The notes under the pieces were generated by a model, which was given only the letters and a program-made list of their open reading frames with translations, had not been told where the DNA came from and did not search any database. Shown here in pieces: positions 4,082 to 62,892 of a DNA stretch of 64,000 nucleotides. The translations under genes were made by a program, and so were the position numbers. Each line of letters opens with the position of its first letter. Positions within the stretch are counted from its first letter, which is position 1. Location of the stretch: the sequence record MK250027.1; one strand, written 5' to 3'.

Positions 4082-4104
4082 ATCGTTTTAATGTAATTTA
4101 ATTT

Positions 4105-8761: not shown

Positions 8762-8786
8762 AATTATTTTATTTTATATTACATTA

Positions 8787-42422: not shown

Positions 42423-43973
42423 TTATGTAATTTCTTTTCGTTTTTCAAGTATATGTTTTAATATTTCATATTCTGTATTCGCTATTTTCTTATCCATTTT
42501 TGCTGCTTTACGCAATGCAAAATAATGTGTAAGAATCGCAGGAACAACAGCATTTGGATCTTTTTTATAAACTGCGCCAGAACATGTTTTAATCTCATCA
42601 GATTTTGGGATATAATTCTTATCTTTGAATAAGAATGATTCAGGAGAAATTTGAAATTGTCTCATTATAGATGGATATAGTGACGCGAAATCTAATCCAC
42701 CTATATATTTAAATATTCCTGGTCTAGTTGGCCACACAAAAGCTCCAACATATTGATTATCAGTTAGTTCTGTGTTTTTATTAAATGGTTTTTCTGGTAT
42801 TACCTTATAATTTGGGTACACAAAGTTACACATAACAACATGTGTTGGTTGAATTGTAGAGAATGCGACATTTAGTTCAAGTCTCAATTCACATGCGAGC
42901 ATATACCAAATTTCAGCAGTCTTTAAGAATCTGTCTATATGTTCAACCAATATGGTATCGATGCAGTTATAGAAAACATATTCTTTGAAATGTTCTTCGA
43001 AGAATTCTTTGAATCCCCACGGGTGATTTACCTTCTTGATACCTAACGCTTTTTCTGCGACAAAATCAAGTGTATTATTTTCTTTTGGTTGGATAGTCAT
43101 GTCCCATGTTTTATAAACCAATAAGTAGTCATAAATTATTTTATGCATAGGGACTTTCACATTGATTGTTTTACCACCGGATCTTGGAGTAATCTTAAAG
43201 TTTGTGAATGTTCTTGTAGGAGAAATTCTTTCAATATCAATATTATTGATTTTACATCTATTATAGATATATAACCAGTCGAATCCTAGAAAATTCCATC
43301 CAGACATTGCAGGAATTGGTTCGATGAATGTTATATAGTCTTCAAGCATTTCCCGTTCTGTTGGAAAAAATCTGAATTCAAATTTATATCCTTTTGTAAT
43401 ATCTGATCCATTGTTTTCCTATGAATACTTATCGATTTGTTCTTGGACCCATTGTTGTTCTTCTAATGTTAAGTCTTTACGTGACCAAATGATAGTCCTA
43501 GGAAATTGTGTCATTGATATAGTATTGATACGAGTTGACGCTTCTTCTGGATCTGGAAATCCTTCATCTGAAACTTCTGTCTCAATATCACACCACCATG
43601 TTGGAGGAATATTCATTTCAAACAGAGGATCAACTGCATGTCCAAATGAATTAAGAATTTCATTTATTCTTAATTCAGGAAGTTTATCAACAGGATGCCT
43701 ACGAACCCATTTATTATCATAAGATTTCCATTGGTGCATAACAGGTGAACCGTCTGGATTAAACTTATAACATTTGTTTACAAAATCATATTCTTGAAAT
43801 GGAGGATCTGCATTTTGTCTGTTTGTATATTTCCATTCGAACATTGATTCTTTAGGAACAGGATATTGAAGGAATTTAACTTGTCCTTGTTTATCTATAT
43901 ATGATACTATTAATTTCTTTGTCGGTGTGCCATCAGGCAATAAATAATCTACCTATTCTTTATTAATTATCAT
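42423..43973 (-). CDS. polB: Family B DNA polymerase, N-terminal piece (exonuclease plus motif A), 516 aa (two TAG)
   Basis: Joins 43419..43940 and 42423..43349. WWCDIET (ExoI), GWNFLGFDW (ExoII), YNCID (ExoIII), DFASLYPSIM (motif A). Ends with TAA in the fingers helix. Confidence 0.9.
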
Positions 43974-43998
43974 AAATGTATAATGATATATTTTCTGA

Positions 43999-44607
43999 TT
44001 AAATTATTTTAGATATTATCTTTAATTTAAGAGCTTCTTCTGAAGTAAGAATCCAATCTTTCTTTCTTGAATAATTATCCTCAAGTTCTTTTCTTGTTAT
44101 TGCTGTTTCTTCAATGATTAATTTATATATCATTTCAGTAAGTCTCTTCGCTTCTTTAACATCATCTTCTAAATCTGCTGTTTTCCCGATTGCAACAGAA
44201 GATGCTTGATGAATTAAGAATGTTGTATTCTTGGTCGCGAATCTTTGTTCATAAGGAACAGAAAGAAGAATACAAATACCTGTAGACATACATGCGCCAG
44301 TTGCAGTGATATTTGTCTTGCAATGATTATTAAGCATTATTAACATATCATGAATTGCATAACCTTGATAACATGTTCCTCCATATGTGTCTAACCATAC
44401 ATTAACATCTGGTATTTTAATTTCTTCTTTTATATTATGACCGAAAAATTCTTTTAATGCTTTTTTATTCTCATCAATTATATTATTATCCCCTGTAATT
44501 AAATTAGTTACCCATTTAATAATATCATCTGATGTTTTTTCATCAATATCTTCTGTAATATATAAATTTCTCTTTGTTACATCAAATGTCTACAATTTAT
44601 TTTCCAT
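43999..44607 (-). CDS. clpP: Second, divergent ClpP-family protease, 202 aa (TAG at codon 6)
   Basis: WLDTYGG...ACMST (Ser)...FLIHQA (His)...KDWILTSEEAL; read-through N-terminus to ATG 44607. Confidence 0.85.
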
Positions 44608-44643
44608 ATATTAAAATTTATTAAATATAATTTTAGTTTAAAT

Positions 44644-44672
44644 ATTATAGTGAGAAAATTGCGATTTGTTTA
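44644..44672 (-). promoter_or_regulatory. Class II promoter TAAACA-N17-TATAAT
   Basis: Upstream of the clpP2-polB(N) unit. Confidence 0.6.
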
Positions 44673-44752
44673 TATATAAAAAAGAGATAATAGAATTAAA
44701 ATAAACTCTATTATCTCTAAAAATATATTTTCATTATTATAAAAAAAGATTG

Positions 44753-45391
44753 TTATCTTCTACCACCGAAATGTCCACCACCATTAAAATTACCAGGTCT
44801 TCCTTGAGTAACTCTCGTTGAACTTCTATCTGACCCAAATCCTTGAGGTCTTCTCTGTTGATTACCAAAATTAGGTCTACCGCTCTGTGGTGGGCGTTGC
44901 ATATTATTTGGTTTATTAGGTTGTTGTCCATTTCCAAATGATGGTCTATTATTAGGTCTACCATAATTCATTGGCTGATGATTATGTTTCATAGGAGGAT
45001 TTCTAAAATCATTTGGTCTTCCAGATCGCATAGGCGGTTTTCTAAATTCATAACCACGTGGTGCAGGTCTCATAAAATGTCTATAACCTGGATGGTAATG
45101 ATATACAAATCCCCTTGGTTTCATATAAGGGGATGGATAAAAATACCAATAATTATTATACCTATATGGATAATAATAGATTCCTCTATATAAGTAATAA
45201 CTTAAAATATTATCTATATAATATGGTGTTCCATACATAATGACTGTAGAAAAATCTACTGTAGTTGAAACGGTTGTATATGTATCGTCATCATACTGTT
45301 GTGTAGATGCGAATGTTGTTGAACATGCTGAAAATGAAATAACAGCAAATAACATAATCAAAAAATATTTAATCTTTTTCATAATCAACAC
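44753..45391 (-). CDS. Bacteroidota-type lipoprotein with Tyr-rich core and Pro/Gly/Arg-rich tail
   Basis: MKKIKYFLIMLFAVISFSAC lipobox; low-complexity C-terminus. Confidence 0.8.
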   Translation of the reverse strand: MLIMKKIKYFLIMLFAVISFSACSTTFASTQQYDDDTYTTVSTTVDFSTVIMYGTPYYIDNILSYYLYRGIYYYPYRYNNYWYFYPSPYMKPRGFVYHYHPGYRHFMRPAPRGYEFRKPPMRSGRPNDFRNPPMKHNHQPMNYGRPNNRPSFGNGQQPNKPNNMQRPPQSGRPNFGNQQRRPQGFGSDRSSTRVTQGRPGNFNGGGHFGGRR

Positions 45392-45466
45392 ACTTTTTAT
45401 TATTTATATGATTTAATACATAATTTCTCTACAGTAAATTCATATTTGTTAGTATGAAAATTCATA

Positions 45467-45931
45467 TTACTTAATACCAAGATGTCTGTCTATCTCATCT
45501 TGCGTCTTTACATTATAAACCATTTCATTGATACCGAAATCTTCACTACCAAATACAATACCATCTTCATCTACACTGTAATTAGAGACAGACTTCATAT
45601 ATTCAAGTTTCTTTTTATCTGATGGCATTGCTTTCGCTCTCTTATGATCATCAAAATATTGATCTTTATAAAACATCCAATAATCAAGAATATCTTTATC
45701 TGATTGTTTTTTGATTGCATCAAATGCTTCATCTTTTGTTTTATATGGACCTCCAAGTTTCCAGCCCACACGATATGCATGAATTTCATCTTGTGTCATA
45801 TCACCTGTATAAACATCTTCCATGTTAGAATACCATGTGAAGTATTCCTCTACATTCTTTGATTCATTAACAGATGTTGAATTACTATTCATTACAGCAT
45901 TGTAAAATTCATTCTTTTGCTTTGTATTCAT
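45467..45931 (-). CDS. Hypothetical protein
   Basis: 154-aa ORF after a class I promoter. Confidence 0.8.
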   Translation of the reverse strand: MNTKQKNEFYNAVMNSNSTSVNESKNVEEYFTWYSNMEDVYTGDMTQDEIHAYRVGWKLGGPYKTKDEAFDAIKKQSDKDILDYWMFYKDQYFDDHKRAKAMPSDKKKLEYMKSVSNYSVDEDGIVFGSEDFGINEMVYNVKTQDEIDRHLGIK

Positions 45932-45966
45932 AATTTCAAATATTTTAATATGTTTAACTTACAATA

Positions 45967-45974
45967 CAAAGATA
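45967..45974 (-). promoter_or_regulatory. Class I host-type promoter TATCTTTG
   Basis: ATGTATCTTTGTA. Confidence 0.8.
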
Positions 45975-45998
45975 CATAAAATATTTGATATTAAAAAA

Positions 45999-46658
45999 TT
46001 ATTGTATTGTAATATTATATGTCCAACCATCTTTATTATATATTTGAGAGTCACTGGGAAAATAAACTACTCCAGCGTTTGGTATATCATATGTTCTAGT
46101 TTGATATTTTGAGGACGATTCTCCTATATTCATTGTTAGACTTACTACAGTTTCAGAAGAAGTATATCTTATAACCATATCTACAACAATAGTATTTCCT
46201 ACTGGTGAATTATTTTTATAAAAATAATTTTTTACTAAATATGCACCATAAATCATTTTTGAACTATTCTGCATATTATACACAAACATTATATCTGCTT
46301 TTCTTTCATACACAGTAACAGTTTGCTAAACTTGGAATAATATATTTCCATTATACTTAAAAGTAATAAGGCGTGAAGATGTTGTTTCTGAGATATTATA
46401 GTATATTGACCGACCTGTTGTTTTATCTTCACTACTAGCTGCGTCACTGACACTCGCAGAGCATCCAGATGTATCGCATGTTAATGAAAAAGTATCATTT
46501 CCTAATTTATTATTAAAATTACCATCAATATCCTATAAACCAAAAAATACCTATCTTGTTGGTAGAACACCAAAAGCACTTGTATCTAACATGCCACTTT
46601 TTGCATCCTAATTTATTTGCATAATATTTGTACCTGTATATTTCTAAAAAGTTGACAT
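45999..46658 (-). CDS. Beta-rich protein, possible BACON/Ig-like domain, 219 aa (five TAG)
   Basis: Read-through from ATG 46658; N...SETTSSRLITFKYNG...V(TAG)Q resembles a BACON C-terminal strand pattern. Confidence 0.55.
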
Positions 46659-46730
46659 AAAATAAAAAGTATTTTTATATCTACACCCCAATATGAAATA
46701 CTATAACTTATTTTACATAACTAATAAATA

Positions 46731-47624
46731 ATGAAAAATAATTATTCATTTCAAATGAATTCTAAATAGATAGGGAAATTAATATATAATTTGGATTTGG
46801 GAAAATTCAATTATAAAACAAAATTATTTGAATCTAATAATAAAGATAATTGGTGGAGAAATGAAGAATCATATAATACAATAAAATATCATCCATTAAA
46901 TTCAAATACAAATAATCTATTGTATAAAGAATATGAACAAGAATATCTATATGAAGGATTAATAAGTTCAGTAGAACCAAATAAAACAAAAAATATATTA
47001 GATAGAAATGCTGGAGGATTTATACATGATATACGCATTGTATATAATCCTTTATAGTTAGATATGAAAACACCAGTTATTGATTTCTTTATATATAAAG
47101 AAGATTATTATGATTTAGAATATGGTAAAATTGCATATGATGAATTATTAACATTAATTAATAATTTAGGATATTTTGTATCAGGTAAAACAGAATTATC
47201 AGATATTATAAATGTTGTTATAATGCCAAAATTTTTATACGAAGTAACATATGAAATATATAAAGGAGATGACTTTTTATTTCATATAACTCCATTATAG
47301 AATAAAAAGAAAATATTACAAAAAGGATTAATACCAAAATATAAAAATTATAGGTTAGATAATTATCCAGATAGAATATATTTTTATACAAGTAAGCAAG
47401 AATCTAAATTAAATTTATTATGTAAAAATTTATCTAATAATACATGTATAAAAGATTGGTTAATTCTTAAAGTAAATATTAAAGATAAAAAAAGTTATAA
47501 AGAAAATGATAAATCTACAATGTACAGATTTTTTGAAGATCCAAAATCATAGTATGGCATTTTTACATATGAAAATATAGATCCTTAGTGTATATCTATA
47601 TATAAAGAAATAAGGTTATCATAA
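46731..47624 (+). CDS. ADP-ribosyltransferase-fold (Tpt1/DUF952-like) domain protein, 297 aa (five TAG)
   Basis: Joins 46791..47057 and 47064..47300 plus an untracked tail: LFHITP...KKILQKGLIP...YPDRIYF...FEDP...GIFTYENIDP. Confidence 0.65.
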
Positions 47625-47642
47625 ATATTGATAACCTTATTT
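47608..47642. terminator. Bidirectional terminator
   Basis: AAATAAGGTTATCA/TGATAACCTTATTT. Confidence 0.8.
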
Positions 47643-47648
47643 TTATAT

Positions 47649-48299
47649 TTAATAAATTCTACATTCAACTGATTGATCAACTTCTCTCTCCATACAATAA
47701 CTTGCAAAGAAATCAGCTTGCATAATCAACACTGACAAAGGAACTTTCTGATATGACTGTTGCATAGAAGGTTTTTGATAATTACTCATCCATGCTCCAA
47801 TATCACTCATACCCATATGCCACATTATAGCACACAATTCTTCACCACTCAACTTAATAAATGATTGCGCAATGAAAATAGACTTCGGTGCATGTCCAAG
47901 TGGAAGTTTCTCGTCTATCTTATATGAATAATACTTAATCCATTGGTTAGACTCATCTTTCTTAAACTTTTCATACATTACATAATTATTTGCTTTACAC
48001 AAATCATGTAACAATGCGCAAATAATTAATGAATCTTCAGAAATACTATCAATGTTTTTCTCTGGAAGTGCCAACTTTTTATATGTCTCTAAAAATCCTT
48101 TGGCCGCATAATATACATTCAATGAATGCTGACATAATCCTCCCGGATAATTACAATGATAAATCGTAGAAGACGGTGCTTCAAAGAAATCTGATTTCTC
48201 TGAAAGCCAACTAATCAAATTCTCAATACCTTCACGCTTTGTACTTCTAAGTAACTCAATAAATTCTTGTTTATTCTTCTCTTTTACTATTTGATCCAT
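47649..48299 (-). CDS. HD-domain hydrolase
   Basis: APSSTIYH...GGLCQHSLNV...LLHDLCK...GH...WHMG...QAD. Confidence 0.9.
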   Translation of the reverse strand: MDQIVKEKNKQEFIELLRSTKREGIENLISWLSEKSDFFEAPSSTIYHCNYPGGLCQHSLNVYYAAKGFLETYKKLALPEKNIDSISEDSLIICALLHDLCKANNYVMYEKFKKDESNQWIKYYSYKIDEKLPLGHAPKSIFIAQSFIKLSGEELCAIMWHMGMSDIGAWMSNYQKPSMQQSYQKVPLSVLIMQADFFASYCMEREVDQSVECRIY

Positions 48300-48335
48300 A
48301 AAATTTATTATGTTTAAAAATTAATAATTATATTC

Positions 48336-48364
48336 ATTATATAATTATACTTTATAAAAGTTTA
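48336..48364 (-). promoter_or_regulatory. Class II promoter TAAACT-N17-TATAAT
   Basis: Upstream of the HD gene. Confidence 0.6.
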
Positions 48365-48452
48365 TATAAACAATTCATATTATTTTTATATAATAATTAA
48401 ATTATAATTTTTACAATTAATATAAATAGTATAAATTAAATAATTTAGATAA

Positions 48453-49058
48453 ATGAAATACGTTACTGCAAAAGAAGCAAAGAAATATTTTTAGATTTCA
48501 GGGTAGACACTAAAAACGTGGAAAGATTCTAATAAAATCTTAACGAAACAATTTTCATACAAGAAGATTTTGTATGATATTGATTCTGTAAATAATGATA
48601 ATGTTAATTTAAATAATAGAAAAAACGTAATATATGCACGAGTTTCATGTAGTAATTAGAAATAGTCATTAGATAATCAGATAGAATTAATTAAATCATA
48701 TATGATTTCTAATGGTATTAAAGTGGATGATATATATTCAGAAATTGCTTCTGGACTAAATGAAAATAGGAAAGAATTATCTAGATTAATTCATGATATA
48801 GATAATGAATAGATTAATACTGTATATATATCATTTAAAGATAGACTAACTAGATTTGGATTTAATTATTTTAAATCAATGTTTGAAAATCATGGAACTA
48901 AAATAATTATATTAGACGAAAATGAAGAAACAAATAAAGATTATAAAACAGAATTAGTTGAAGATTTAATATCTATTATACATCATTATTCTACTAAATT
49001 ATATTCAAATAGAAGGAAAGAATTGAAAGAAATAGAAAAAATTATAAAAAATGAATAA
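48453..49058 (+). CDS. tnpA: IS607-family serine transposase, 201 aa (five TAG; absent from track)
   Basis: N-terminal HTH (TAKEAKKYF..ISG.TLKTW), IYARVSCSN(TAG)K(TAG)SLDNQ, SEIASGLN, KDRLTRFGF, ELVEDLISII. Confidence 0.9.
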
Positions 49059-49107
49059 TTTTTAAAATAATTTAGATAAATATTATAAAGATTATAAAAG
49101 TTATAAA

Positions 49108-50457
49108 ATGCAAGTATTGAAGATTAAATATCAAACAGATGATTAGTCATTAGATATTATACAGGATTATATGAGACAATATAGTTCTGTATAGCATTTT
49201 GTATATAATAGAAATCAAGAAGGTAAATCATAGAAAGATATAAAATAGCAACTTAAATCTTTAAATAATGTAGATTTATTAGATAGTTGGTTTATTCAAT
49301 GTTCTTTCTATGATATTCCAAATAAAAATAATGTAATATTTGGTGGAAAGAAAAATTACTTTTAGAGATTAAAGAATAATATTACTAAAGAACAATTTAA
49401 ATAGAAACGATTATCAGCTATATATTCAATAGGTGAAGTAGTTAATAAATCAGTTAAAGGAAACAGAAAATTTCATATAGAACAAGATTTAGAAAATATT
49501 ACTTTCAAACCTAATAAATCTACTAAAATAAATTTACAACTTATAGGACTAAATAAACGTAAATAGATTCTATCAAAACTTTATTAGAAACAAGAACAAA
49601 AAGAAATAAAGATAGCTTATAAGTTAGACTTAGAATATGTTTATATAATATTTGATGAAACTAATATTTATAATTATAAAACTAAATTTATAAAGAATAG
49701 AGTTCTCTCATTGGATTTGAATCCTAATTATATAGGATGGAGTATTGTTAATTGGAAATCAGAATCAGAATTTGATGTAGTTAAATCTGGTATTTATTCT
49801 ATTAAAAAGTTAAATGATAAAGATTTTAATTTAAAGAATAAAGGGTATAGTTCTGAATCTAATGAAAGAAAATATATAAGTAATAAACGTAATTTTGAGA
49901 CTATATAGATAGTAAAGAATTTAATTAATAAAGCAATATATTATAAATGTCAATTAATTTCTATTGAAGATTTAAATATTAAATCAAGTGATAAAGTGTT
50001 TGGTAAGAGATTTAACAAGTTAGTTAATAATTCATGGTGTAGGAATACATTTGTAAATAATTTAATTAAACGATGTAATATATTCAATATAAAGTTATTA
50101 AAAGTTAAACCGGAATATAGCTCATTTATTGGTAACTTTTTATACCGTTCATTAAATTTACCTGATATGGTATTAGCGTCAATAGAAATTGGACGTAGAG
50201 GATATGAGTTTTATAATCAATATATAAGTAAAACTAAAGAGATAAAAAAGAATATAATTCAACCTGATTTAAATATGTATCAAAGGTTGTACCTTAAGTC
50301 ATTGGAAGAATTTAAGTTACAACCTACATACAAGGATTTGATTGGACTATATTACTTCTTCAAAAAGTCGAAACTTAAATATCGACTTTCTACAGATTAG
50401 TTTAATCTGTAGTTTTACAGATTTTATTCAAATGTAAGTTTAATTACATTTATATAA
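49108..50457 (+). CDS. tnpB: TnpB-related RuvC nuclease lacking the Zn finger, 449 aa (eleven TAG)
   Basis: VLSLDLNP (RuvC-I), ISIEDL (RuvC-II), PEYSSFIGN...PDMVLASIEIGRR (RuvC-III); joins 49711..49908 and 49996..50400. Confidence 0.85.
50371..50441 (+). ncRNA. Candidate omega/reRNA scaffold overlapping the tnpB 3' end
   Basis: Perfect hairpin CTACAGATTA-GTT-TAATCTGTAG nested in AAACTTA/TAAGTTT, at the position expected for TnpB guide scaffolds. Confidence 0.45.
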
Positions 50458-50541
50458 ATTATAAATGTTATAATTTAATACAATAAAATTATTTAAATAT
50501 ATGAAAACTAAATAAAAACATAAGATAAAATAAATTTAATT

Positions 50542-52047
50542 ATGAAAACTAAATTATTGATTTTTTTAATGTGTGCATTCAGTTTTATAGGATTTACTGG
50601 ATGTTCTACAGAAGTAGAGAACAACAACACTATCATTATTCCAGGTTATAATGGAACTGAGGTGGTGAAGACAGGTTCTAACTTACTTGTCAATGTTGGA
50701 GAAAATAAGTATGGTGAGAAAACACAAGCATTATCAAGAGTAAAAGCAATAACACGTGCATCCGTTGATAAATCAACTATTTCGATTACAACAGATGATC
50801 AAATCAATACACCTACAATTGGTTTGTATTCAAACTATGCATGGAATACTTACACTAATGGTCAGCAAATCTATGTTGGTGCAAGCAATGGTTATCTTTT
50901 TGCAACAACATCATTGACAACACCTTACAAAACCGAATGGAATGTTAATAATACCATAAGTAATGGTGTACTTACATTGACATCACAGATGTTGGATGAC
51001 AAATATGCTAAGCCTGTTCCTGTGACATTCTGGGGTAATCATTCATTAGTAACATCAAGTGTAGAAAAAACAATCTTTGATCCTAATGATAATGATTGGA
51101 AGAATATGGCAGTGACAAGTACAACAAAGTCTGTTGCTATCTCAAAGTCTATTGAATACGCAAATTCAGCTGTTAGAATGAATTTGACATTAGGAACAGA
51201 AGGTGTTCTTTGTTGGTATGACAAGTATGATACATCAAAAGATGAAGCTGATGTTACAACAGTAAAGATAACAGAAGATAATATCAATACTATGCCAACT
51301 TCTGAGACAAAGACTTATGAAGTAAATGGTAAACAATATAAAATTATCAATATTGATAATATTGGTAGCAAGACCGTAGGAAATTACTTGCATTACAAAG
51401 CAGGTTATGCTATAAAGATTGCACAAACGGACAAAGGTACAGGAAACTGGCACTTCATTGGTCCTAATGAATCAGATGACATCAACTATGAAGTTCTTGA
51501 AGCACGCATTGTTTCATCTAAATCTTGTACTTATAAGAATGAATATCAATATGAACCAAGTTCAGATGAAGTTACTTATAAGTATGAGTTGAATGAATCA
51601 CTTCAATCAGGTGAGAATGCAGTATTCTCTATTATGCCAACATCAGAAAAATCATCTGTTGTCGTTTTGAAATGTAAAATCACAAAATTCCCAACGCAAG
51701 ATCATGATAGATTCCTTTGGTATATCAAAGAATCAATAAAAGATAATTCACCTTACATAAAAGTTGGTGATAACTCTACATTCTATATCATTGGAAAGAT
51801 TTCAACATCTGACAAGACAATACCTACAGGTTCACCTTACTCAACAACATGGAACAAAGGTATTTATTGTCCTGATGTAATAACTAATGTAAATGTACAT
51901 ATTGATGATCTCACGGTAAATGGTTCCGTTGTAGTTGATCCAGATGGTTCAGATGAAACAGATATTAATAAGATACATTATAATTTCGATTATGAATATG
52001 GTACTATGGATGGTGTTTGGACAACAGGAAATACAACAAAACATTAA
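50542..52047 (+). CDS. Bacteroidota lipoprotein, possibly fimbrillin (type V pilin)-like
   Basis: 501 aa, lipobox FTGC, ITRA motif after the N-terminal segment, Thr/Ser-rich beta content, higher GC, no TAG. Confidence 0.6.
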   Translation: MKTKLLIFLMCAFSFIGFTGCSTEVENNNTIIIPGYNGTEVVKTGSNLLVNVGENKYGEKTQALSRVKAITRASVDKSTISITTDDQINTPTIGLYSNYAWNTYTNGQQIYVGASNGYLFATTSLTTPYKTEWNVNNTISNGVLTLTSQMLDDKYAKPVPVTFWGNHSLVTSSVEKTIFDPNDNDWKNMAVTSTTKSVAISKSIEYANSAVRMNLTLGTEGVLCWYDKYDTSKDEADVTTVKITEDNINTMPTSETKTYEVNGKQYKIINIDNIGSKTVGNYLHYKAGYAIKIAQTDKGTGNWHFIGPNESDDINYEVLEARIVSSKSCTYKNEYQYEPSSDEVTYKYELNESLQSGENAVFSIMPTSEKSSVVVLKCKITKFPTQDHDRFLWYIKESIKDNSPYIKVGDNSTFYIIGKISTSDKTIPTGSPYSTTWNKGIYCPDVITNVNVHIDDLTVNGSVVVDPDGSDETDINKIHYNFDYEYGTMDGVWTTGNTTKH

Positions 52048-52069
52048 TTATTAAGTTATTATAAAATTA

Positions 52070-52103
52070 AAAGGAATATAAACAACTAAGTTTATATTCC
52101 TTT
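52070..52103. terminator. Bidirectional terminator
   Basis: AAAGGAATATAAAC/GTTTATATTCCTTT. Confidence 0.8.
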
Positions 52104-52109
52104 ATTTTT

Positions 52110-52370
52110 TTACTTATGACTTTCAATTTCTTTATTAATATCATCAATAGAAACAAGTCCCACCCATTTCTTTAATTCTTCACCATTATCACCTTCCAAT
52201 ACAATAACAGGAACATTTCTGATATTATACTTATCAATAACTGCAGATGTTTCATCATCTTCATCATCTACATCATATTTCTTTAATTCACATGTATTAA
52301 AGTTTTCCAACCTCTTATCCATTACATTACATGGACCACACCATGTAGCACCTACTTTAATTAATCTCAT
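52110..52370 (-). CDS. trxA: Thioredoxin
   Basis: ATWCGPC active site; IRNVPV cis-Pro loop. Confidence 0.9.
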   Translation of the reverse strand: MRLIKVGATWCGPCNVMDKRLENFNTCELKKYDVDDEDDETSAVIDKYNIRNVPVIVLEGDNGEELKKWVGLVSIDDINKEIESHK

Positions 52371-52388
52371 ATTATTTAAAAATTATTT

Positions 52389-52817
52389 TTACCAACATTC
52401 ATAATCTGTAATATCTTCAGAATCACCATTTTTGTTACATACAATACGTATACAGCTACCAATACCAGTTCCTCCTTCAATAAACGAAAATGGAAGCTTA
52501 TATTTACTTTTTACATTCCAATTATCTTTATTGTAATTCGTAACATCTTCAGATTCATTACATGTTTCACATACATATGTATGGCTAAAACCACAATTCC
52601 ACATATCAATTAAATATACAGAACCTCTACCACCATTGCACACTGCTTTATGCTTTACATAAAAATTATGTGCATTCTTTTTCTCTATATCATCCATTTC
52701 AGTAAATCCATGATTATCTTTCAATAATGCAATAGATGTGATACAAGACTGTGTACCAACATCATTCTCATGTTTATTAATAAATGATATAGACATTTCT
52801 AATTCTTTATCTGTCAT
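52389..52817 (-). CDS. Hypothetical Cys-rich protein
   Basis: 142 aa; CETC and an internal duplication (EDVTNY/EDITDY). Confidence 0.75.
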   Translation of the reverse strand: MTDKELEMSISFINKHENDVGTQSCITSIALLKDNHGFTEMDDIEKKNAHNFYVKHKAVCNGGRGSVYLIDMWNCGFSHTYVCETCNESEDVTNYNKDNWNVKSKYKLPFSFIEGGTGIGSCIRIVCNKNGDSEDITDYECW

Positions 52818-52905
52818 CTTATTAAAATTAATTCAATATTTTATATTATATGAAAAAAGGTAAGATTTGTTTCTTAATCTTACCTTTATATTTTATTTAC
52901 TATTA

Positions 52906-53880
52906 TTACCAAAGTGCGGCTGTATAACATAAGTTAGATGTTAATGTAGTATAACCAATAATAGATATAATTCTATTACAAGGTTCAAGAATCATTTTTT
53001 CAAATTGTTTATCATAATCTATTTCAGGTGCATATTCTATTGGATAAGCGCCAGGTAAAAATGCAAAACAATCATAATTTCTATCCTTTGCATAATACCA
53101 CTTAACTTTATCTGCTGTCTTAATAGGATTATACTTTACCTTATATTTCTTATTCTTTGGTTGATTCAAAATAAAGTTAGCAATTCCTGAAGCCTTAACC
53201 TGAATAGGACAATGTTCTCCGAATACCAACTTATTCTTATCATCAAGAACGAACTTTTGATAATTTCCTATTGAACTACCTTTTGAAATCTCTGATGGAT
53301 CTTTAAACATAAACTGTTGTTTATATCCCTTTATTTTCGCAATAATATCTTCATATGGTGGTCTTTCCTTATGTTCCTGATACCAATGCAACATATAACA
53401 TGTAAAGTCTTTTTGACATTCTCTTGCAAATGGTGGTGTAGAACCTTGAACGATCTCAAGTCCCTTATAAACGACTTCTTCCATTTGCTCCAAGAAAATA
53501 TTAGGTTCCTTAAAACACTCTGCCATTGCATAATGTTTCTTTGAAGTCAAGATAGTTGTATCTGCAATTTTCTCTAACTCAAGATTTTGAATATTTACAT
53601 CACAATTATATTTCTTTGCATATTCCTCATATTTCTGTTGCATATATGGTCCACAACCATAATTCCAAAGATCAACAACAAATTGTGCACATTTAGACTC
53701 TGGAATATCAAGCTGTTGACAAATTCTTCCAAATTCTACATATATTGAGTTGTGAGCCAGTATCTCATTTGCGAAGAATGTATGAGTATCATCTACCTCA
53801 ATATCATATACATACTCATCATTAAAATCTTCAAGTTGCTCTATTACATCAATATCCTCTACTTGTATATTGTAATTCAT
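52906..53880 (-). CDS. polB: PolB C-terminal piece fused to a 44-aa C-intein
   Basis: MNYNIQVEDID...VYDIEVDDTHTFFANEILAHN|SIYV..., then LELEKI, SKKHYA, YKGLEIV, CPIQVKAS, DKVKWYY. Confidence 0.92.
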   Translation of the reverse strand: MNYNIQVEDIDVIEQLEDFNDEYVYDIEVDDTHTFFANEILAHNSIYVEFGRICQQLDIPESKCAQFVVDLWNYGCGPYMQQKYEEYAKKYNCDVNIQNLELEKIADTTILTSKKHYAMAECFKEPNIFLEQMEEVVYKGLEIVQGSTPPFARECQKDFTCYMLHWYQEHKERPPYEDIIAKIKGYKQQFMFKDPSEISKGSSIGNYQKFVLDDKNKLVFGEHCPIQVKASGIANFILNQPKNKKYKVKYNPIKTADKVKWYYAKDRNYDCFAFLPGAYPIEYAPEIDYDKQFEKMILEPCNRIISIIGYTTLTSNLCYTAALW

Positions 53881-53956
53881 CTTTTTTCTCCTATTATTAA
53901 TTGTGTATTTTCAACATTATTAAAATGTTCTAATATATAATTATATAAATAATTTT

Positions 53957-54432
53957 TTATATTGTTTTTATATCTTCTCTATCTTTATGTGTTTTATAGA
54001 ATATCCAGTTATCAATAAAATATGGATAAATGAATAACATATTTAATTTATTATTTTTGCATCTTCCCATTTTTGAATATCAGTTTCTGTCCATGTATGA
54101 ATTAATCCATCATAATTATTTTTCGTATTTGTTTTAGAACATTTACTTAAAAAATAATTATACTTATCTTTATCTAATTCTTTATTATATAAACATTTAT
54201 TATGCCAAAATGATCCTTGATACTCTATATATAAATTATACTGTTTTATATAAAAATCACAATTATGATTATATTCTTTTGTTTTATAACATCTTATAAC
54301 ATCATCACCATATAATTCATTTAAAAAAACATATAAAATTTCTTCTTCAATAGATGTATGCTTATTATAAGATTCTGTGACTTTATCTTGTATTTCTGAT
54401 AACTATGAAATATAATCATCATCTATTACCAT
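53957..54432 (-). pseudogene. Vsr/DUF559-like endonuclease domain with a frameshift at the A5 run (54054-54058)
   Basis: CDFYIKQYNLYIEYQGSFWH...WTETDIQKWEDAK; the conserved NNKLNMLFIY continues only in the -1 frame. Confidence 0.6.
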
Positions 54433-54731
54433 ACTAAATTATTATGTTCATTTTCATAATTCTTTTCATTATAACAACACTCATCGAATTTTTTCACTTT
54501 TTCTATATATTCATCTATAATATCAATACCTAAATATTTTGCATATATTATTTTTGCATCTGATATATCACATTTATCATTCATTGTAATACAATTAACA
54601 TTATTATTCAATGCAAAGTATATATCTTTATATGTTGATATTATTTGTTTTAGAAAATATTTTAATAACGTATTATGTTTCTTAAACATATTATTCCTTA
54701 TAATCCTTATTTTTGAACGATAATATATCAT
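54426..54731 (-). CDS. Hypothetical protein, possibly N-terminal fragment of the degenerate endonuclease
   Basis: 101-aa ORF overlapping both neighbours. Confidence 0.45.
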   Translation of the reverse strand: MIYYRSKIRIIRNNMFKKHNTLLKYFLKQIISTYKDIYFALNNNVNCITMNDKCDISDAKIIYAKYLGIDIIDEYIEKVKKFDECCYNEKNYENEHNNLVW

Positions 54732-55846
54732 ATTTCAGTTATATCATTTAATTGATCTTTATTATTAATCATCTATATAAGTGATTTTATAGTTCCTTTC
54801 TTATCATTTTTATATGTAGATTCCCAAACTATTATAACCTTGCAATTCAATGTCTGTTGAATATCTTCAATTCTTTCTCTATCATGATTCCATTTATCTT
54901 TAACTGAACGTCCGTTTCTTAATATAAAATAATTTGTTTCATTAGCATTATATTTCTTTGGATTAAAATGATAAAAATCTCCATAAAATTCTATAACAAT
55001 ATTTAATGATTTATCGTAATAATCTACATGATAAAAATTATTATTTAATAACTTAACTGTATATTCTATATAAGTATCATTATCTTTATAATATTCTTTT
55101 AAATGAGAAAATAACTCTAATGATATATTTGACTTATTACCTATTAAATAATATTGTTCTGAACGTTTTTCTACAAATTCATTATATTTTTGTGTTCCAT
55201 CTTCTTTACCGTATTCTTCGATAAAATAATCTAATGTACATGTATATCTCTGACGTTCGATATAAGCATTCCATATTTTTAAACCATCTATTTCACCATG
55301 TCTTTTAATAAGATTTTCCTTTGTTACCGCTCTAGATTTATTGTATTCATCAAATTTATCTTGAGACATACCATATTTTTCATGTTTATATTCATATGTA
55401 TTTGTAACTGATTGTTTATTACAATATGAATTCCATTTTTCTAATCCTATATCTTTTCCATATCGTTTAATCATTTTTTCTTTGGTAACACATTGTCTTT
55501 CTTTTGCTACAGGGTTGAAATCCTTATCAGGTACTCCAAATCCATACTACGTATATTTTGCAGCTTTATGCGCAAATTTAAATTTTACATCTTTAAAATT
55601 TGGAAATTTCTTGCATACACAATCATAACACCTACATAAATGATATTCATTACCATTATAATTTCTAGTACTTAAAAATGATAACTTATTATTATCACAT
55701 ACTATTTTATGTGTTTTTGAGTTTATATGAAATGTACCATTATCATATATAAGAAATTTACCACATTCTTTACAATAACATATTGATGGATCTATATTAT
55801 TATCTTTACAATATTGAACTACGTTCTATTCACTTAAATATTTCAT
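54728..55846 (-). CDS. Free-standing Vsr-like homing endonuclease, 372 aa (three TAG)
   Basis: ATG overlaps the TAA of the Pol N-intein gene. Cys motifs, KYG repeats, HVDYYDK...IVIEFYGDFYH...IIVWE. Confidence 0.8.
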
Positions 55847-56658
55847 TATCTATCTAATGTTATAATTTTATCAGATTTTTTTATTTCTCTTGCAGGAACA
55901 GATATTAATTCATTATTTCGTATAACCATTATACTATGATCACCTGTAACTATAAGCTCTTTACCGGATTTAGTTTTTAACCTAAACTTATCTTTAGTTA
56001 CTTTATGTCTCATTATATAATTAATCGGTCGTGTAATAGTTTTATAATCATGATCCTTATATGATAATGTATCGTGATTATGTACAGGAATGACTTCAGA
56101 CCCATTTTGTAATTTTATAACAACATCGTCATTTTCATATTTTGCTTTAGTAAAAAAGCCTTCCATTGAAAATACTTTATTATCTATAACTACTTGAGTA
56201 TCAGCAGTTTGCGAATCCGTATCCCCCGCTACAGTTAGTGATTGGTTTCCATCAAGATACGAAAACTCGGGTCCGTCCAACGTACCTGTTTCAGTTGTCT
56301 TACCTTTTGCGATACTTACTCGTTTTGCTTTCTCCGAATCAATACCAAGTTTCTTATGCAATTCTGTATCATTCTGAAATATACCACTGAAATACGCGTT
56401 AACAGAATTCTCAGAATAATGGTTCAAATCCTGACCCTGAAGAGTAATAGACTCTGCAACTGCTGTGTTATGCGCAATGAAATACTTGCTCGCAGTTGCT
56501 CCATAAACACTATTGATAAATTTCTTTAACGCTAGCTGTTTAGTCTCATAAAAATCCCCTAAATTTTTTAATCTTTCTACTTCTTTTTCAAGTTCTTCAA
56601 TACTGCAATTCTCAGGGTCTACTTGGCAAAATTTATAATTCTTATGTTGTTCTTCCAT
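55846..56658 (-). CDS. polB: PolB middle piece (motifs B and C) fused to a 122-aa N-intein
   Basis: KQLALKKFINSVYG (motif B), AGDTD|SQTADTQV...VTGDHSIM (intein block B), TAA stop. Confidence 0.92.
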   Translation of the reverse strand: MEEQHKNYKFCQVDPENCSIEELEKEVERLKNLGDFYETKQLALKKFINSVYGATASKYFIAHNTAVAESITLQGQDLNHYSENSVNAYFSGIFQNDTELHKKLGIDSEKAKRVSIAKGKTTETGTLDGPEFSYLDGNQSLTVAGDTDSQTADTQVVIDNKVFSMEGFFTKAKYENDDVVIKLQNGSEVIPVHNHDTLSYKDHDYKTITRPINYIMRHKVTKDKFRLKTKSGKELIVTGDHSIMVIRNNELISVPAREIKKSDKIITLDR

Positions 56659-56682: not shown

Positions 56683-56711
56683 ATTATACAAATAAAAATT
56701 CTATTTGTTTA
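56683..56711 (-). promoter_or_regulatory. Class II promoter TAAACA-N17-TATAAT
   Basis: Upstream of the polB middle gene. Confidence 0.6.
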
Positions 56712-56747: not shown

Positions 56748-58406
56748 ATGGAAATTACAGATCAAATTATAATAGATAAGTTAACAGTATTTAGACATAA
56801 TAAAATACAATTAAATACATGTAGAATAAAAGAAACATGGTTAAAAGATCATGGTTTATATGAGTATTTAATTAATAGATTTAAAACCATAGATAATATT
56901 CAAGAAATTATATATAGGATATATTATAAATTACCGGATAATTTACAGTTACATTGTAATACTTGTGGTAATGAAATACCTTTACAATTTAGAGGATTCT
57001 TATATGGATATAATCAATATTGTTCTTATAAATGTTCTTTAAATGATCCAAATAAAATACATAAATTAACAAATGTAAAACAAAAAGATGATATAGATGA
57101 TAATTATGTATTGAATTTAATGATTAAAGACAATAGATTAGTTTCAGAATATTGTAAGAATAAAAAACTTAAGCAATTTGGTATATATGATTATATGATG
57201 AATAGATATGACGATTTACAGAAAAATAAATCTATTATTCAAGAAATTATATATAGAATGAAATATCATATAGATAAATCTCCTCGATGTCCAACATGTG
57301 GGAAATATGTTAACTTTTATAGATTTAGTGAAGGATTCAGACATTATTGTTCAAATGAATGTGCAAATAAGAATGAAAATAATGTTAACATAAAATTAAA
57401 TAATAAGCATAAAACTATAGAAAATAAATGGTTAAACCGTGGATATAAAATTAAATATACAGAAAATAAAAATGAATTTCTTGTATATAATCAATGTAAT
57501 TTACATAATCCATTTAAAATTAAAAAATATACATTCTTTAATAGACAAGGAAAAGATATAATTATGTGTCCTATTTGTAATCCTGAAAAAAATATGGAGA
57601 CTTCTATAGAATATAAAATTAGGTTAATATTAGAGAAACATAATATAAAATTTACGCAACATGTTAGGTATATAATATCACCAAGGGAATTAGACTTTTA
57701 TTTACCTGCTTATAAAGTAGCAATAGAATGTAATGGGATTTATTGGCATTCAGGGATAAACGGTAAAAATAGATTTAAAGTTAAATATGAACTATTATCC
57801 AAAACTGATATATAGATGTTAACTTTTTGGGAAGACGATATTCATTATAACATTGATAAGATAGAAAATATCATATTAAGAAGTTGCAATTTAGAAAAGA
57901 AATTATTTTCAAATGATACTGTTATTAGAGAAATAGATATTGATATATGTAAGTCATTTATTAATAATAACTCAATTAAAAAATATATTATATCTAATAT
58001 AAATTTAGGTTTATTTAAGGATGATAAATTATTATTTGTTATGACATTTTCAAATAATAATGATAATAATTATACATTAAATCAAATATGTTATAAAGAT
58101 AATTTATATGTTATAAATTCTGAAAAATTATTATTATATTATTTTTTTAATAATTATAAATTTAATAAATTGATAACATATTGCGATTTAAAAATTGAAA
58201 ATAATAAATTATATGAAAAATTAGGATTCAAATTAAATAGTGATAAATTAAAATTTAATCTGAATTATTATAATTATAGAACAACTGAACATAGAATTAA
58301 TAAGAAAGAAGTTAATCAATTATTGAAATTAGATGATTCTGATTCATTAGAAGATTATATGAAATGTTATTCAGGATATTTAATATATGAGAAAGAGAAT
58401 GTATAA
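56748..58406 (+). CDS. Vsr/DUF559-like homing endonuclease, 552 aa (one TAG)
   Basis: Joins 56748..57815 and 57816..58406. Two YLINR..QEIIYR-CxxC repeats, ELDFYLP...AIECNGIYWH, LTFWED. Confidence 0.85.
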
Positions 58407-59725: not shown

Positions 59726-60463
59726 TTAATTAATACTTGCTTCTTTTATAGGATCTTCATCATTATCATTTTCATCTGAAATACCCATTGTTTCCTCTAA
59801 ATCTTTAACATCATCAAATGCAGATTGATCTGGTAATTGGAACATTGGGTGAATAACATGCTCATTTATATAATCAAGATATTCTGGTGTAAATACCTTA
59901 TCAGACCAAAATTCAGTAAAAGGAACTTGTTCATTAAGATGTTTTACTACAATATACCTTGCTGTATCTTTCGGTAAACAATAATGTGTTTCACCATCAT
60001 CTGTTGTCCATGTATATACTTTCTTTTTATCTGAATCTGATAATTTATCATATTCTTTTTGCGTAAGTAAATTTCCTCTACAAACACCTGAATTGTCCCA
60101 TGTCATAAATTGTTCCAAACCAACATATGGGTTAGGTTTTTTAAAATATGGAATTTGAAATTTCACTTTAATTGGTCTGCAAAAACGAGACTTAACTGGT
60201 TTTGCTGTAACTAAAACACCATTCTTTGTACCTGCATCAGAACCTTGTCTTGATTTTGCAGCTGAATCATTCTCTTTATCTTCCAGTTTAGCAGCACTTA
60301 ATTCAATTGTAATTGATGCATTATATACAATACCTGAATTATGATTTATAATACCATTTGCAGAAACATAATTATGTGTGTCTTTAACTGTTAAATCTAT
60401 TACATCCTCACTTAATTCTGACTATATCTTCTTTACAATCTTTAACTTTCTATATTTCATCAT
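59726..60463 (-). CDS. uvsX: RecA/UvsX C-terminal piece fused to a 42-aa C-intein (TAG at codon 14)
   Basis: MMKYRKLKIVKKI(TAG)SELSEDVIDLTVKDTHNYVSANGIINHN|SGIVYNASITIEL...KSRF, in frame with track ORF 59726..60166. Confidence 0.9.
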
Positions 60464-61790
60464 TTATATATTGCGTTATTTTTTTATATTCTAAATATTT
60501 AAAAACTGTTTCTGAAATTCTAACAATACCTAATACATTATTATCTATTAATAAAATATCATTATCTCTTTGCTTATCCAATTCTTCCTAATGAAATACA
60601 CCTTGTCCACCATCATATTCAAATATAATTATTTTACCTTTATATTCTAAATACCCATCACATGCATAAAATATTTTATTTCGTGTTTTATCTGATATTT
60701 CATCTGGAATTATTACTATATATGGTTTATGAATGATTTTCTTATCGATATATTTTTGTAAAAATTCAAAACATCTATTTTCTGATTCTGATATATTTGT
60801 CATCCAGCCACCTTTTATTTTACATAAAAAGTTATCACTATGTTTCCAATTTTTCCAAATATTTTTTGCTAAATTTGATTGTAATTCTTTTTTCTTTAAA
60901 TAATCTTCATATGATTTATAACCTTTATATTCCTCACATGATGGATTAATTTCATGCACTTTTAATTTAGCTTCATCATCAGAATATCCTAACTTCTTCC
61001 AATAATTAAACGTCCATACACTATGTTCTTTTGCATAATATGAAGCTTTCTTTTTTGCATCCTCTATAGTTAGCCCTAAATTTAACCAATATTTTGTTGT
61101 GCTTTTAGAACATGTTGAATTATTCTATTGAACTTTACTTACTTCTATTTTTGCGTCTTCTAATGTATAACCTTTATTTAACCAATATTCAACACAACGC
61201 GGTGATCTATTTTTATTTAATTCTCGTATAATTGATTCTGCTTCAGTATCACTATATCCTCGTGCTAAATAAAACGATTTACTACTTTTAATATATCCTT
61301 TATTCTACTTATCAGGATAATATTGTTTACACCAAATCATTAACTAATCATTAATATCTCGTTCTGTTATAAAATCAGAAAATGTTATGAAATTTATAAA
61401 TCTTTTAATAAAAGAAATATTATTCAAATTAAATGAATATTTATTATCTTTAATGAATGAATTAAATATATCATCTTTATTAAAATATACAACTGTCTTT
61501 TTATACTTATTTAATATAATTTTTTTATATTCATCAAATGAATATCCTCTAACATCCCAATATAAAAATGTTGTATTTTTATGTTTATTTGTAATATTCT
61601 TTAAATAATTTAATAATATATCTATTATTTCTTGAGAGCCATATACTTTATTTTCGCTAAATAACTATTGTAACTTATTAATATACTATGTATTATTTGT
61701 ATTAATATTAAAATTATAAAACTTATTATATTTGTTTATAAACTATATAAACTCATTTATATCAAATACATTTATTTCTACTTTTTTCAT
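60408..61790 (-). CDS. Free-standing Vsr-like homing endonuclease, about 460 aa (many TAG)
   Basis: Read-through ORF with YW-x-x-KGY repeats and CDGYL...IFEYDGG...FH; overlaps the C-intein start and ends in TGA. Confidence 0.8.
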
Positions 61791-61885
61791 ATTAAACATT
61801 TCAAATTTTTGATTATTTTATACCTTATAATATTTATTCATATATAAAGTAAAAATAATCAAAAATTAAAAAATATTTTATGGTA

Positions 61886-62860
61886 TTATTCAGAAATTGC
61901 ATAAATTTCATCATTTTCATTTAATTCTGAAACTATTTTCCATGAGCTATCCAACTCTGGTTTATCAGGATTAATAAGAAATCTATGTGTATTTGAACAT
62001 GTAATAGTCTCTCCATTATCAAATGTAAATGTATATGTCGGTTTTTTAAAATGCCAAAGTTTCTCTACATCATGATATTCACCATCATGTGACAATACTT
62101 TATCTCCAACAACAACATCTTTCATTTGTTTAATTCCATTATTTGTAATAATTTTTTCATCTGGTCGTAAACAACCCATTGCTTGTATATTCTGAGGAAT
62201 AAATGACATAGATTGATATACATGGTTCACTACAATCCAAGGAATTTGCAATTTTGCAATTGGAGTAGCACAAACTCTAAACATTGCTTTAGTATCTTTT
62301 GCTTTTGTAAAATCTGCTTTTTGTGAACCTGACAATGTATCTTCACGTTCCTTTTCAGATGTTAAATTTCCGAGAGAATCCAATACAATAATAACTTTAT
62401 CATGTTGACCATACTTATCTTGTTGTTCTTGCAATTTATCACATAAATTTGCAATAAATTGGCTTGTCTCCATAATTGTATTAACTTTTTTAATAATTAA
62501 TTTAGATGGATCTACTCCAAGACGCCTAACAAAATCAGAATCTATTGCACCTTCAGAATCAAGATAAATTGGAATATAACCTAATTTTTGAGCTTCCCTA
62601 CAACATGAACATGCTAAAAAAGATTTACCAGCGCCAGATGTACCCGAGAACGTTACAACTCTACCAGTCGGTATTGCTTTATAAATATCACCTGAACAAC
62701 ATGCATTTAAAATATAATTACCTGTTGAAATCCATTCTTTTATATTTGAATACGCTGAATCTGCAATAATTTCAGCTTGATCATCTATACTACTTACCAT
62801 TGACATTAATGAACCAATACCACCTTCAAAATCTTCGCTTGACTACTTTTTCTTTGCCAT
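61886..62860 (-). CDS. uvsX: RecA/UvsX N-terminal piece fused to a 95-aa N-intein (TAG at codon 6)
   Basis: ISTGNYILN, GTSGAGKS (Walker A), YLDSE, IVLDS (Walker B), VNHVY, QAMG|CLRPDEKI...TCSNTHRF, TAA stop. Confidence 0.92.
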
Positions 62861-62892
62861 AATATTAAATTACGTTAATTTTTATTTTATAT

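Follow-up and report, generated by a model that had tools for sequence, protein, structure and literature searches.

The replicative DNA polymerase of the gut megaphage Lak-B8 (Prevotella phage), a family B enzyme (PolB), very probably consists of three separately translated proteins, two of which would be trans-spliced by a split intein while the third would be joined to them non-covalently. The genes, here called pieces 1, 2 and 3 of polB, lie in a stretch of 64,000 nucleotides (the window), position 1 of which is position 468,001 of the GenBank record MK250027.1 (551,627 bp), on which whole-genome searches were run. The window has a G+C content of 25%; its segment 42000-57000 is 100% identical to Lak-B8 and 98.8-100% identical to eight other Lak-B genomes. 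An earlier note on this DNA had claimed that PolB is encoded here in three genes of permuted order, with one split lacking an intein, and that the mature enzyme is a non-covalent heterodimer in which one subunit is itself trans-spliced. The three genes are found where it had placed them, all on the minus strand, and its picture of the mature enzyme is supported by sequence, by comparison with relatives and by a structural model. It had overlooked the genetic code: the genome is TAG-recoded, and piece 1 contains two in-frame TAG codons.

The three pieces are matched by the Pfam families PF03104 and PF00136 and together make up a family B polymerase of the T4 gp43 type. Piece 1 carries the N-terminal domain, the exonuclease, motif A and the first fingers helix. 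It matches DNA_pol_B_exo1 (1.8e-11), positions 28-153 of the DNA_pol_B profile and, at 6.6e-68, phrog_2062, a family of N-terminal halves with 502 positions. Aligned with RB69 gp43 (2.3e-29), it covers residues 188-503 and thus ends inside the first long fingers helix, as the earlier note had read it. The exteins of pieces 2 and 3 match positions 12-118 and 92-369, respectively, of phrog_1918, a family of C-terminal halves (382 positions) that is matched by the two pieces together. On phrog_262, the profile of full-length gp43 (856 positions), pieces 1, 2 and 3 cover positions 114-500, 497-569 and 581-840. Exo I-III and motifs A, B (KQLALKKFINSVYG) and C (DTD, with its Ser after splicing) are all intact and in colinear order.

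The Lak records in GenBank carry no gene annotation, and the standard code conceals piece 1. Under translation table 11 it appears as two open reading frames (ORFs) because of the in-frame TAG at 43419-43421. Code 4 (TGA = W) was tried and rejected: the in-frame stop is TAG, and the two ORFs stay unjoined. Lak phages decode TAG as Gln, and a tRNA with anticodon CUA and release factor 2 are found in every complete Lak genome (Devoto et al., PMC6784885); a tRNA search of the window itself found none. Across the window, TAG read-through fuses many broken frames into long ORFs, one of which encodes a prohead protease of the T4 type and contains 6 TAG codons. In Lak-A1, A2, B8 and C1, piece 1 has TAG as its codon 7, at the position where relatives that use table 11 have the Q of MII[NH]KEQ, the start shared across the family. 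The position of codon 185 is occupied by Glu in other clades, and by AAG or AAT in related strains from public runs. Pieces 2 and 3 contain no TAG codon. The code is therefore code 15 (TAG = Gln), and with TAG read as Gln piece 1 is one gene, not two. The replicase of one of the largest phages known thereby receives a correct gene model; standard-code gene calls would break it into four or five fragments.

Pieces 2 and 3 carry the two halves of a split intein. The N-extein of piece 2 ends at residue 148 (DTD) and is followed by the N-intein, with Ser1 (S149) in block A (SQTADTQV) and with block B, whose residues T238 and H241 do not vary among 66 homologues. Piece 3 opens with blocks F and G, the terminal Asn and the +1 Ser, and this Ser is the residue that completes DTDS. 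Both halves map onto 9hth, a solved PolB mini-intein of 173 residues: the N-intein aligns with residues 2-119 of 9hth_A (6.6e-12), and also with PI-PkoII, and the C-intein aligns with residues 143-170 and with the PolB16 intein 8cpn. The N-terminal part of 9hth reads like the gp43B1 intein of Aeromonas phage Aes123. The split intein of Aes123 PolB1 is cysteine-less, trans-splices in vitro and is used in protein engineering (PMC11923092). The intact catalytic residues, purifying selection and the activity of this homologue suggest that the Lak intein likewise trans-splices; it is a further cysteine-less natural split intein related to that of Aes123.

At the other junction the break is of the fingertip type seen in gp43A/gp43B pairs, that is, between the two fingers helices and with neither intein nor intron. 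In the unsplit relative P0107 (757 residues, 49% identical to piece 1) the fingertip is contiguous; piece 1 aligns up to its residue 484 and piece 2 from its residue 498. The 13 residues between these points in P0107 compare with 11 in Lak, 2 from piece 1 and 9 from piece 2, which accounts for every domain and leaves no space for a fragment of an intein. Piece 1 has its own stop (TAA, 42423-42425) and piece 2 its own start (ATG at 56658), and 18 residues precede the motif B helix in piece 2, where a short segment had been noticed. A search of the end of piece 1 and the start of piece 2 with intein Pfam models gave no match. Likewise, no Rfam family reached its gathering score anywhere in the window; a search of both junction ends in E-value mode found no intron, its only match being a sub-threshold one to a small RNA family (RF02844, 40 bits vs 49) on the hairpin behind piece 1, which is taken as generic hairpin similarity.

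A structural model of the complex is consistent with pairing of the two fingers helices across this break. It was computed from residues 186-516 of piece 1 (the stretch after the second TAG) and residues 1-146 of piece 2, and it scored 0.70, compared with 0.00 for the best of 3 controls. In a benchmark, 58 of 80 solved complexes and 2 of 110 mismatched pairs attained this score, counts that hold only roughly here because author-made alignments were fed to the model. Contact agreement between runs was at least 84%, and the predicted local distance difference test (pLDDT) of the partner was at least 77. In the modelled interface, residues 477-516 of piece 1 (residues 292-331 of the modelled chain) meet residues 20-55 of piece 2. 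The confident contacts are those of the two fingers helices, where residues from about 480 to 516 of piece 1 lie antiparallel to residues 20-55 of piece 2; the motif A region packs against residues 57-78 of piece 2. Association of the two halves is thereby predicted, and they may be jointly active.

The three pieces could then act as follows. Pieces 2 and 3 would be translated from one locus, with a Vsr-like homing-endonuclease gene wedged between them in the layout known as a 'fractured gene'. The intein halves would associate and trans-splice via Ser1, the terminal Asn and Ser+1, which would restore motif C (DTD-S) and yield a gp43B-like subunit of 428 residues with fingers helix 2, motifs B and C, and the thumb. 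Piece 1, a gp43A-like subunit of 516 residues with the 3'-5' exonuclease, would come from another transcription unit behind clpP, both of its TAG codons being read as Gln. The two subunits would assemble non-covalently through the antiparallel fingers helices and a shared palm sheet that unites motifs A and C.

The pieces encode the only recognizable DNA polymerase of Lak-B8. A hidden Markov model (HMM) search found exactly three PolB stretches in each of Lak-B8, A1, A2 and C1, and no intact PolB copy in these whole records; an intact second polB was what the earlier note had named as telling against its reading. The exonuclease domain is single in Lak-B8, and in the 551 kb of this genome, the sole one searched for both, there are no Pfam matches to PolA or Pol III alpha. 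The ratio of nonsynonymous to synonymous substitution rates (dN/dS), calculated between Lak-B8 and other Lak clades (for piece 1, Lak-A1 and C1) at a near-saturated dS of about 0.9, is 0.08 for piece 1, 0.04-0.05 for the piece 2 extein and 0.04 for piece 3. The range across all three pieces, 0.04-0.09, indicates strong purifying selection, and so the pieces are not pseudogenes; the intein halves have values of 0.08-0.28.

Among relatives, the fingertip split is common. Almost all members of the nearest 120 clusters of piece 1 homologues, which come from contigs of up to 744 kb, have 485-530 residues; of the 148 best cluster representatives in an exhaustive search made without profiles, 105 have 450-560. 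When homologues of piece 1 are aligned, 214 of 242 stop no more than 30 residues from where the Lak protein stops, and 23 are fused. Proteins resembling piece 2, with 265-280 residues, form more than 230 clusters, and an intein domain is present in all but 4 of the 120 listed. In a FastTree phylogeny of 238 homologues, at least 14 changes between split and fused states are required; Lak falls in an all-split clade of 73 tips, and the fused forms P0107, P0115, P0245 and P0249 are nested among split ones, although the tree is unrooted with some low supports and thus cannot tell ancestral fused forms from re-fused ones. Other arrangements exist as well. For example, in contig L008 pieces 1 and 2 are fused and end in an N-intein, followed by a homologous endonuclease and then by a C-intein piece, and in L011, L012, L014 and L015 piece 1 has no other PolB piece within 6-10 kb. 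The fingertip split, usually treated as an oddity of a few T4-like phages, is therefore the majority state (214 of 242) among the nearest 150 clusters.

The distance and orientation of the genes differ between Lak genomes. In Lak-B8, 8.9 kb separate the end of piece 3 from the start of piece 1, which lies downstream on the same strand, as had been noticed, and nine independently assembled Lak-B genomes have this layout at an identity of at least 98.8%. In Lak-A1, A2 and C1, however, piece 1 lies about 224, 222 and 229 kb, respectively, from pieces 2 and 3 and on the opposite strand. Comparison of blocks places window 30.1-47.6 kb at 187.8-206.8 kb of Lak-A1, window 52.1-58.4 kb at 430.0-424.3 kb (inverted) and window 58.4-64 kb at 517-522 kb. 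Because the blocks come from separate Lak-A1 regions, the permuted 9-kb layout is a rearrangement particular to Lak-B. The three separate pieces are thus kept in Lak-A and Lak-C while the 9-kb neighborhood is not; the permuted spacing is a lineage-specific accident, and unlinked genes are the general rule. The tripartite enzyme persists even where its genes are completely dispersed, at distances of 9 kb to 229 kb and on either strand. Tandem duplication and loss were considered as the origin of the Lak-B8 order and set aside, as a rearrangement of blocks relative to Lak-A1 accounts better for the closeness of the genes in this phage. A permuted order of adjacent genes is seen in contig L013 (4457-9198), where fused pieces 2 and 3 without intein (507 residues) stand 20 nt upstream of a piece 1 of 509 residues, 58% identical to that of Lak, which is followed by a P0003-like endonuclease; that order could have arisen by tandem duplication with loss of the outer halves.

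The closest known counterpart is Aes123 (JN377899.1), for which the depositors annotated gp43A, gp43B1 (putative N-intein), a putative VSR endonuclease and gp43B2 (putative C-intein). As in Lak, its N-terminal half ends at the fingertip without an intein, and the middle piece has an N-intein after DTD. The ends of piece 1 and gp43A are homologous (residue 512 vs residue 492 of 498), the inteins are homologous (via PDB 9hth) and have Ser nucleophiles in both phages, and so are the endonucleases. The differences are that the four Aes123 genes are contiguous and colinear, whereas Lak piece 1 is unlinked from pieces 2 and 3 and needs TAG = Gln; the exteins are about 28% identical. A similar tripartite annotation exists for Tenacibaculum phage PTm5 (AP019525.1; ORF-234, ORF-237, ORF-238 and ORF-240), a jumbo phage of a Bacteroidetes host that Iyer et al. 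placed with Lak-B8 in group 2.2 (PMC7824862). It comprises a 497-residue 'DNA polymerase' and, about 2 kb later, an 'intein-containing split DNA polymerase precursor', a VSR endonuclease and another ORF annotated as 'DNA polymerase'. The counterpart of piece 2 is 34% identical to that of Lak over 93% of its length, but the PTm5 genes are colinear within 7 kb and use the standard code. Given these two annotations, the three-protein mechanism is already on record. What is new in Lak is that the genes are scattered and that piece 1 depends on suppression of TAG; mechanistically it adds nothing beyond Aes123. In the Lak literature searched there is no mention of a split polymerase or of inteins.

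Each of the two breaks also has precedents of its own. The T4-like phages 25, 44RR, 31, 65 and 133 (Petrov and Karam) have an intein-less break in the loop between the fingers helices, but in two colinear genes that are 2 bp to 3 kb apart. In phage 25, 43A and 43B co-purify and polymerize without ligation (PMC2988022), and Pfu polymerase split at the fingertip has full activity, even when reconstituted from separate fragments (PMC3061061). The locus of piece 2, endonuclease and piece 3 fits exactly the 'fractured genes' described in the available part of Dassa et al. 2009 (PMC2677866), and Lak-A2, which lacks the endonuclease, fits the 'endonuclease lost' stage set out there; the genes named in that part are DnaE, NrdA/NrdJ, IMPDH, terminase, DNA ligase and gp41, PolB not being among them. 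Unlike the fractured genes described in it, Lak adds a second fracture, which is intein-less. Precedents for PolB from unlinked genes, each with one mechanism at one site, are Methanothermobacter thermautotrophicus (two genes 85 kb apart, associated non-covalently, but split in the palm and not at the fingertip) and Nanoarchaeum equitans (split intein, unlinked genes).

Other readings of the locus have to be weighed against three proteins that form one enzyme. It is very unlikely that the pieces fail to assemble, with piece 1 working by itself, perhaps as an exonuclease, and the spliced product of pieces 2 and 3 having another role. The genes are indeed unlinked, in different transcription units and, in Lak-A and Lak-C, more than 220 kb apart; the M. 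thermautotrophicus enzyme nevertheless works from genes at a distance, and the complex model, as a prediction, passes its controls. PolB needs the catalytic aspartates of both motif A and motif C. These aspartates are present in Lak, in piece 1 and piece 2, and neither part could therefore polymerize alone. A further possibility is that mobile elements broke up the polymerase and the pieces are what is left of it, replication being carried out by a host enzyme or by a split mini Pol III alpha. Homing-endonuclease genes do crowd the locus, and a second unconventional polymerase has been predicted in this phage group (Iyer et al., PMC7824862), but the low dN/dS at near-saturated dS, the integrity of every catalytic motif and the retention of all three pieces in four Lak clades and hundreds of metagenomic relatives make decay highly improbable. 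Covalent healing of the fingertip as well, either by RNA trans-splicing through a split group I or group II intron or by a cryptic, atypically split intein, would produce a single chain. Atypically split inteins with very short N-fragments are known in phage PolB genes (PolB16; PMC10189870), and an apparent insertion at motif A in close Lak relatives (see below) indicates that mobile elements do invade the polymerase gene. We consider such healing scarcely credible, since Rfam shows no intron at either junction, the pieces end 2 and 9 residues from segments that are contiguous in P0107, with no room for an intein fragment of at least 100 residues, start and stop at the fingertip are kept in the 214 of 242 homologues, and the phage 25 enzyme works unligated at the same junction. 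Finally, the genome was assembled from a metagenome, and the public contigs on the locus are short (50-1,600 nt), span neither flank and show strain variants of the codon-185 TAG alone, so that they offer no independent check of assembly or transcription. The chance that polB is contiguous in the real genome is nonetheless negligible, because the nine Lak-B assemblies agree in layout, and because Lak-A, Lak-C and many unrelated data sets have the same protein ends and starts with proper stop and start codons.

Several points weigh against the three-protein enzyme. The complex model may have passed through memory of single-chain PolB structures; as such structures are solved, its pass indicates likeness to a normal fingers domain and is not a demonstration of binding. 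The split minimal Pol III alpha that Iyer et al. predict in the jumbo-phage group including Lak-B8 (PMC7824862) is of a kind that a Pfam model would miss, and 'only polymerase' accordingly means the only one recognizable by Pfam. The promoter-like likeness between the two polB units is not above chance, and none of the public runs on record as RNA contains the polB locus.

The coordinates of the features are collected in Table 1. In Lak-B8 an endonuclease gene stands between the intein halves, as in fractured genes. Its ATG overlaps the TAA of piece 2 (TAATG), and its product is 34% identical (3e-34) to the 'putative VSR endonuclease' of Aes123 and 38% identical (6e-79) to the ORF that L008 has between its intein halves; Lak-A2 has a gap of 343 nt instead. 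Behind it lie two short overlapping ORFs, the second of which looks like a decayed second endonuclease gene from its sequence, and most of this region (53911-54509) has no counterpart in Lak-A1. A third endonuclease gene, of 552 codons, diverges from piece 2, which places it at the fingertip break. Its homologues in L013 (34%, 4e-76) and L011 (32%, 2e-42) are endonuclease genes that follow piece 1 directly, and endonucleases of this P0003 family are found beside the fingertip break on either side, depending on the phage. This is in keeping with endonuclease invasion as the origin of the break, a route proposed for other fractured genes (PMC2677866).

Table 1. Features of the polB loci and neighboring genes of Lak-B8 (window positions)
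Feature	Position	Strand	Details
polB piece 1	43973..42423	-	516 codons + TAA; two TAG = Gln; gp43A-like
In-frame TAG, codon 7 of piece 1	43953..43955	-	Gln; alignment with Q in relatives
In-frame TAG, codon 185 of piece 1	43419..43421	-	Gln; ORF analysis and clade alignment
Exo I CDIETEV	43572-43592	-	piece 1
Exo II GWNFLGFDW	43275-43301	-	piece 1
Exo III YVFYNCIDT	42954-42980	-	piece 1
Motif A LDFASLYPS	42669-42695	-	piece 1
First fingers helix	42426-42539	-	piece 1
16-bp hairpin directly after piece 1 TAA	42372..42408	-	hairpin search
ClpP-like protease gene	44607..43999	-	202 codons, TAG at codon 6; CLP_protease 3.5e-23
Promoter-like TAAACA-17-TATAAT ahead of clpP/piece 1	44672-44644	-	promoter scan
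Terminator-like hairpin ahead of clpP	44718-44683	-	hairpin scan
polB piece 2	56658..55846	-	N-extein + N-intein
N-extein of piece 2, 148 residues	56215..56658	-	18-residue head (remainder of fingertip loop), second fingers helix, palm to motif C
Motif B KQLALKKFINSVYG	56500-56541	-	second fingers helix, piece 2
Motif C AGDTD	56215-56229	-	end of N-extein, piece 2
N-intein, 122 residues + TAA	55846..56214	-	Intein_splicing (PF14890) 8.1e-11
N-intein block B TGDH (residues 238-241)	55933-55950	-	piece 2
Promoter-like TAAACA-17-TATAAT	56683..56711	-	25 nt ahead of piece 2 ATG
polB piece 3	53880..52906	-	C-intein + C-extein
C-intein, 44 residues	53749..53880	-	block F VYDIEVDDTHTFFAN, block G ILAHN
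C-extein, 280 residues + TAA	52906..53748	-	+1 Ser (S45, SIYVEF), KKHYA, rest of palm, thumb
Terminator-like hairpin behind piece 3	52887-52856	-	hairpin scan
Free-standing homing-endonuclease gene between intein halves	55846..54728	-	372 codons, 3 TAG; phrog_22677 3.9e-48
Two short overlapping ORFs, different frames	54043..54734	-	second with Vsr-like motif; phrog_559 8.3e-8, weak Vsr match
Vsr/DUF559-like homing-endonuclease gene	56748..58406	+	552 codons, 1 TAG; phrog_3339 'homing endonuclease' 2.5e-43
RecA/UvsX-like N-part ending in N-intein	61886-62869	-	RecA 1e-12 + Intein_splicing/Hint
469-codon ORF between recA intein halves	60408-61817	-	8 TAG; no Pfam match
ORF opening with C-intein	59726-60463	-	Intein_splicing positions 123-155, 1.6e-6
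gp32-like single-stranded DNA-binding protein gene	62988-63998		next to recA fractured gene

Piece 1 starts 25 nt behind the end of the ClpP-like gene, with which it is probably co-transcribed; the clpP module also adjoins piece 1 in Lak-A2, and hairpins flank the pair on both sides. The hairpin behind piece 1 likely marks the end of the transcription unit. It is the terminator that the earlier note had seen after the TAA, and it is plausible as such but not classical, with no T-run after it on the coding strand. That note had also put piece 1 behind clpP2 under a promoter of its own, of which the gene order holds and the promoter does not stand out. The promoter-like stretch ahead of piece 2 is also kept in Lak-A1, and a promoter shared by the two polB units was considered, but two copies (with up to 2 mismatches) occur by chance in 37 of 100 shuffles; the DNA is AT-rich, and sigma-70-type scans overall gave fewer matches than the shuffled expectation.

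In one public run (X5), from a strain of 90-95% similarity, the 25-nt spacer that separates clpP from piece 1 is longer by 243 letters in a contig (at 43984-43998). In the relatives P0009 (97% identical to piece 1), P0019, P0024 and P0105, the called protein ends a few residues past GGLDFA, in the middle of motif A, and continues with sequence that bears no relation to it (for instance LTKSGAAVA), which points to an intron or another inserted element in motif A (DFASLYPS); Lak-B8 has no such insertion.

The TAG at codon 7 of piece 1 raises the question of regulation. It may be imagined as a translational gate, such that piece 1, and with it any active polymerase, would appear only once decoding has passed to the suppressor tRNA-Gln(CUA), replication being coupled to the code switch; in such a scheme, unlinked genes would allow separate dosage or timing for the three pieces, and the fingertip split might loosen nucleotide selection, as in engineered Pfu. 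We consider this reading unlikely. The conservation of this TAG is not significant, as Lak-A1, A2 and C1 are near-identical in piece 1 and the comparison effectively involves two lineages. Among the neighbors, clpP has a TAG at codon 6, the endonuclease genes have 1-3 and the ORF between the recA intein halves has 8, a distribution that might tie expression to the code switch.

A second fractured gene is present at 59726-62869 on the minus strand, encoding a RecA/UvsX-like recombinase, and the ORF between its intein halves is probably an endonuclease. Further intein-like stretches were found in a search of the whole record at about 164, 321 and 386-388 kb (record positions).

At the start of the window (2-4087), TAG read-through gives a minus-strand frame of 1361 codons with 22 TAG, which overlaps plus-strand ORFs at 843-1820, 2067-3341 and 3468-4016, all without TAG; none of these has a Pfam match that would point to the coding strand.

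The 12-mer TGTATCTTTGTA occurs in 9 copies compared with 1.3 expected, a count reached in 0 of 100 shuffles. The copies, all on the minus strand, are at 8785, 13504, 15004, 16840, 25883, 28382, 38144, 42231 and 45965. The 12-mer contains TAnnTTTG, the Bacteroidetes -7 promoter consensus. The copies that were checked lie just upstream of minus-strand genes, and none precedes a polB piece. The 70-90 nt around the 12-mer also have copies scattered over the Lak-A1 genome.

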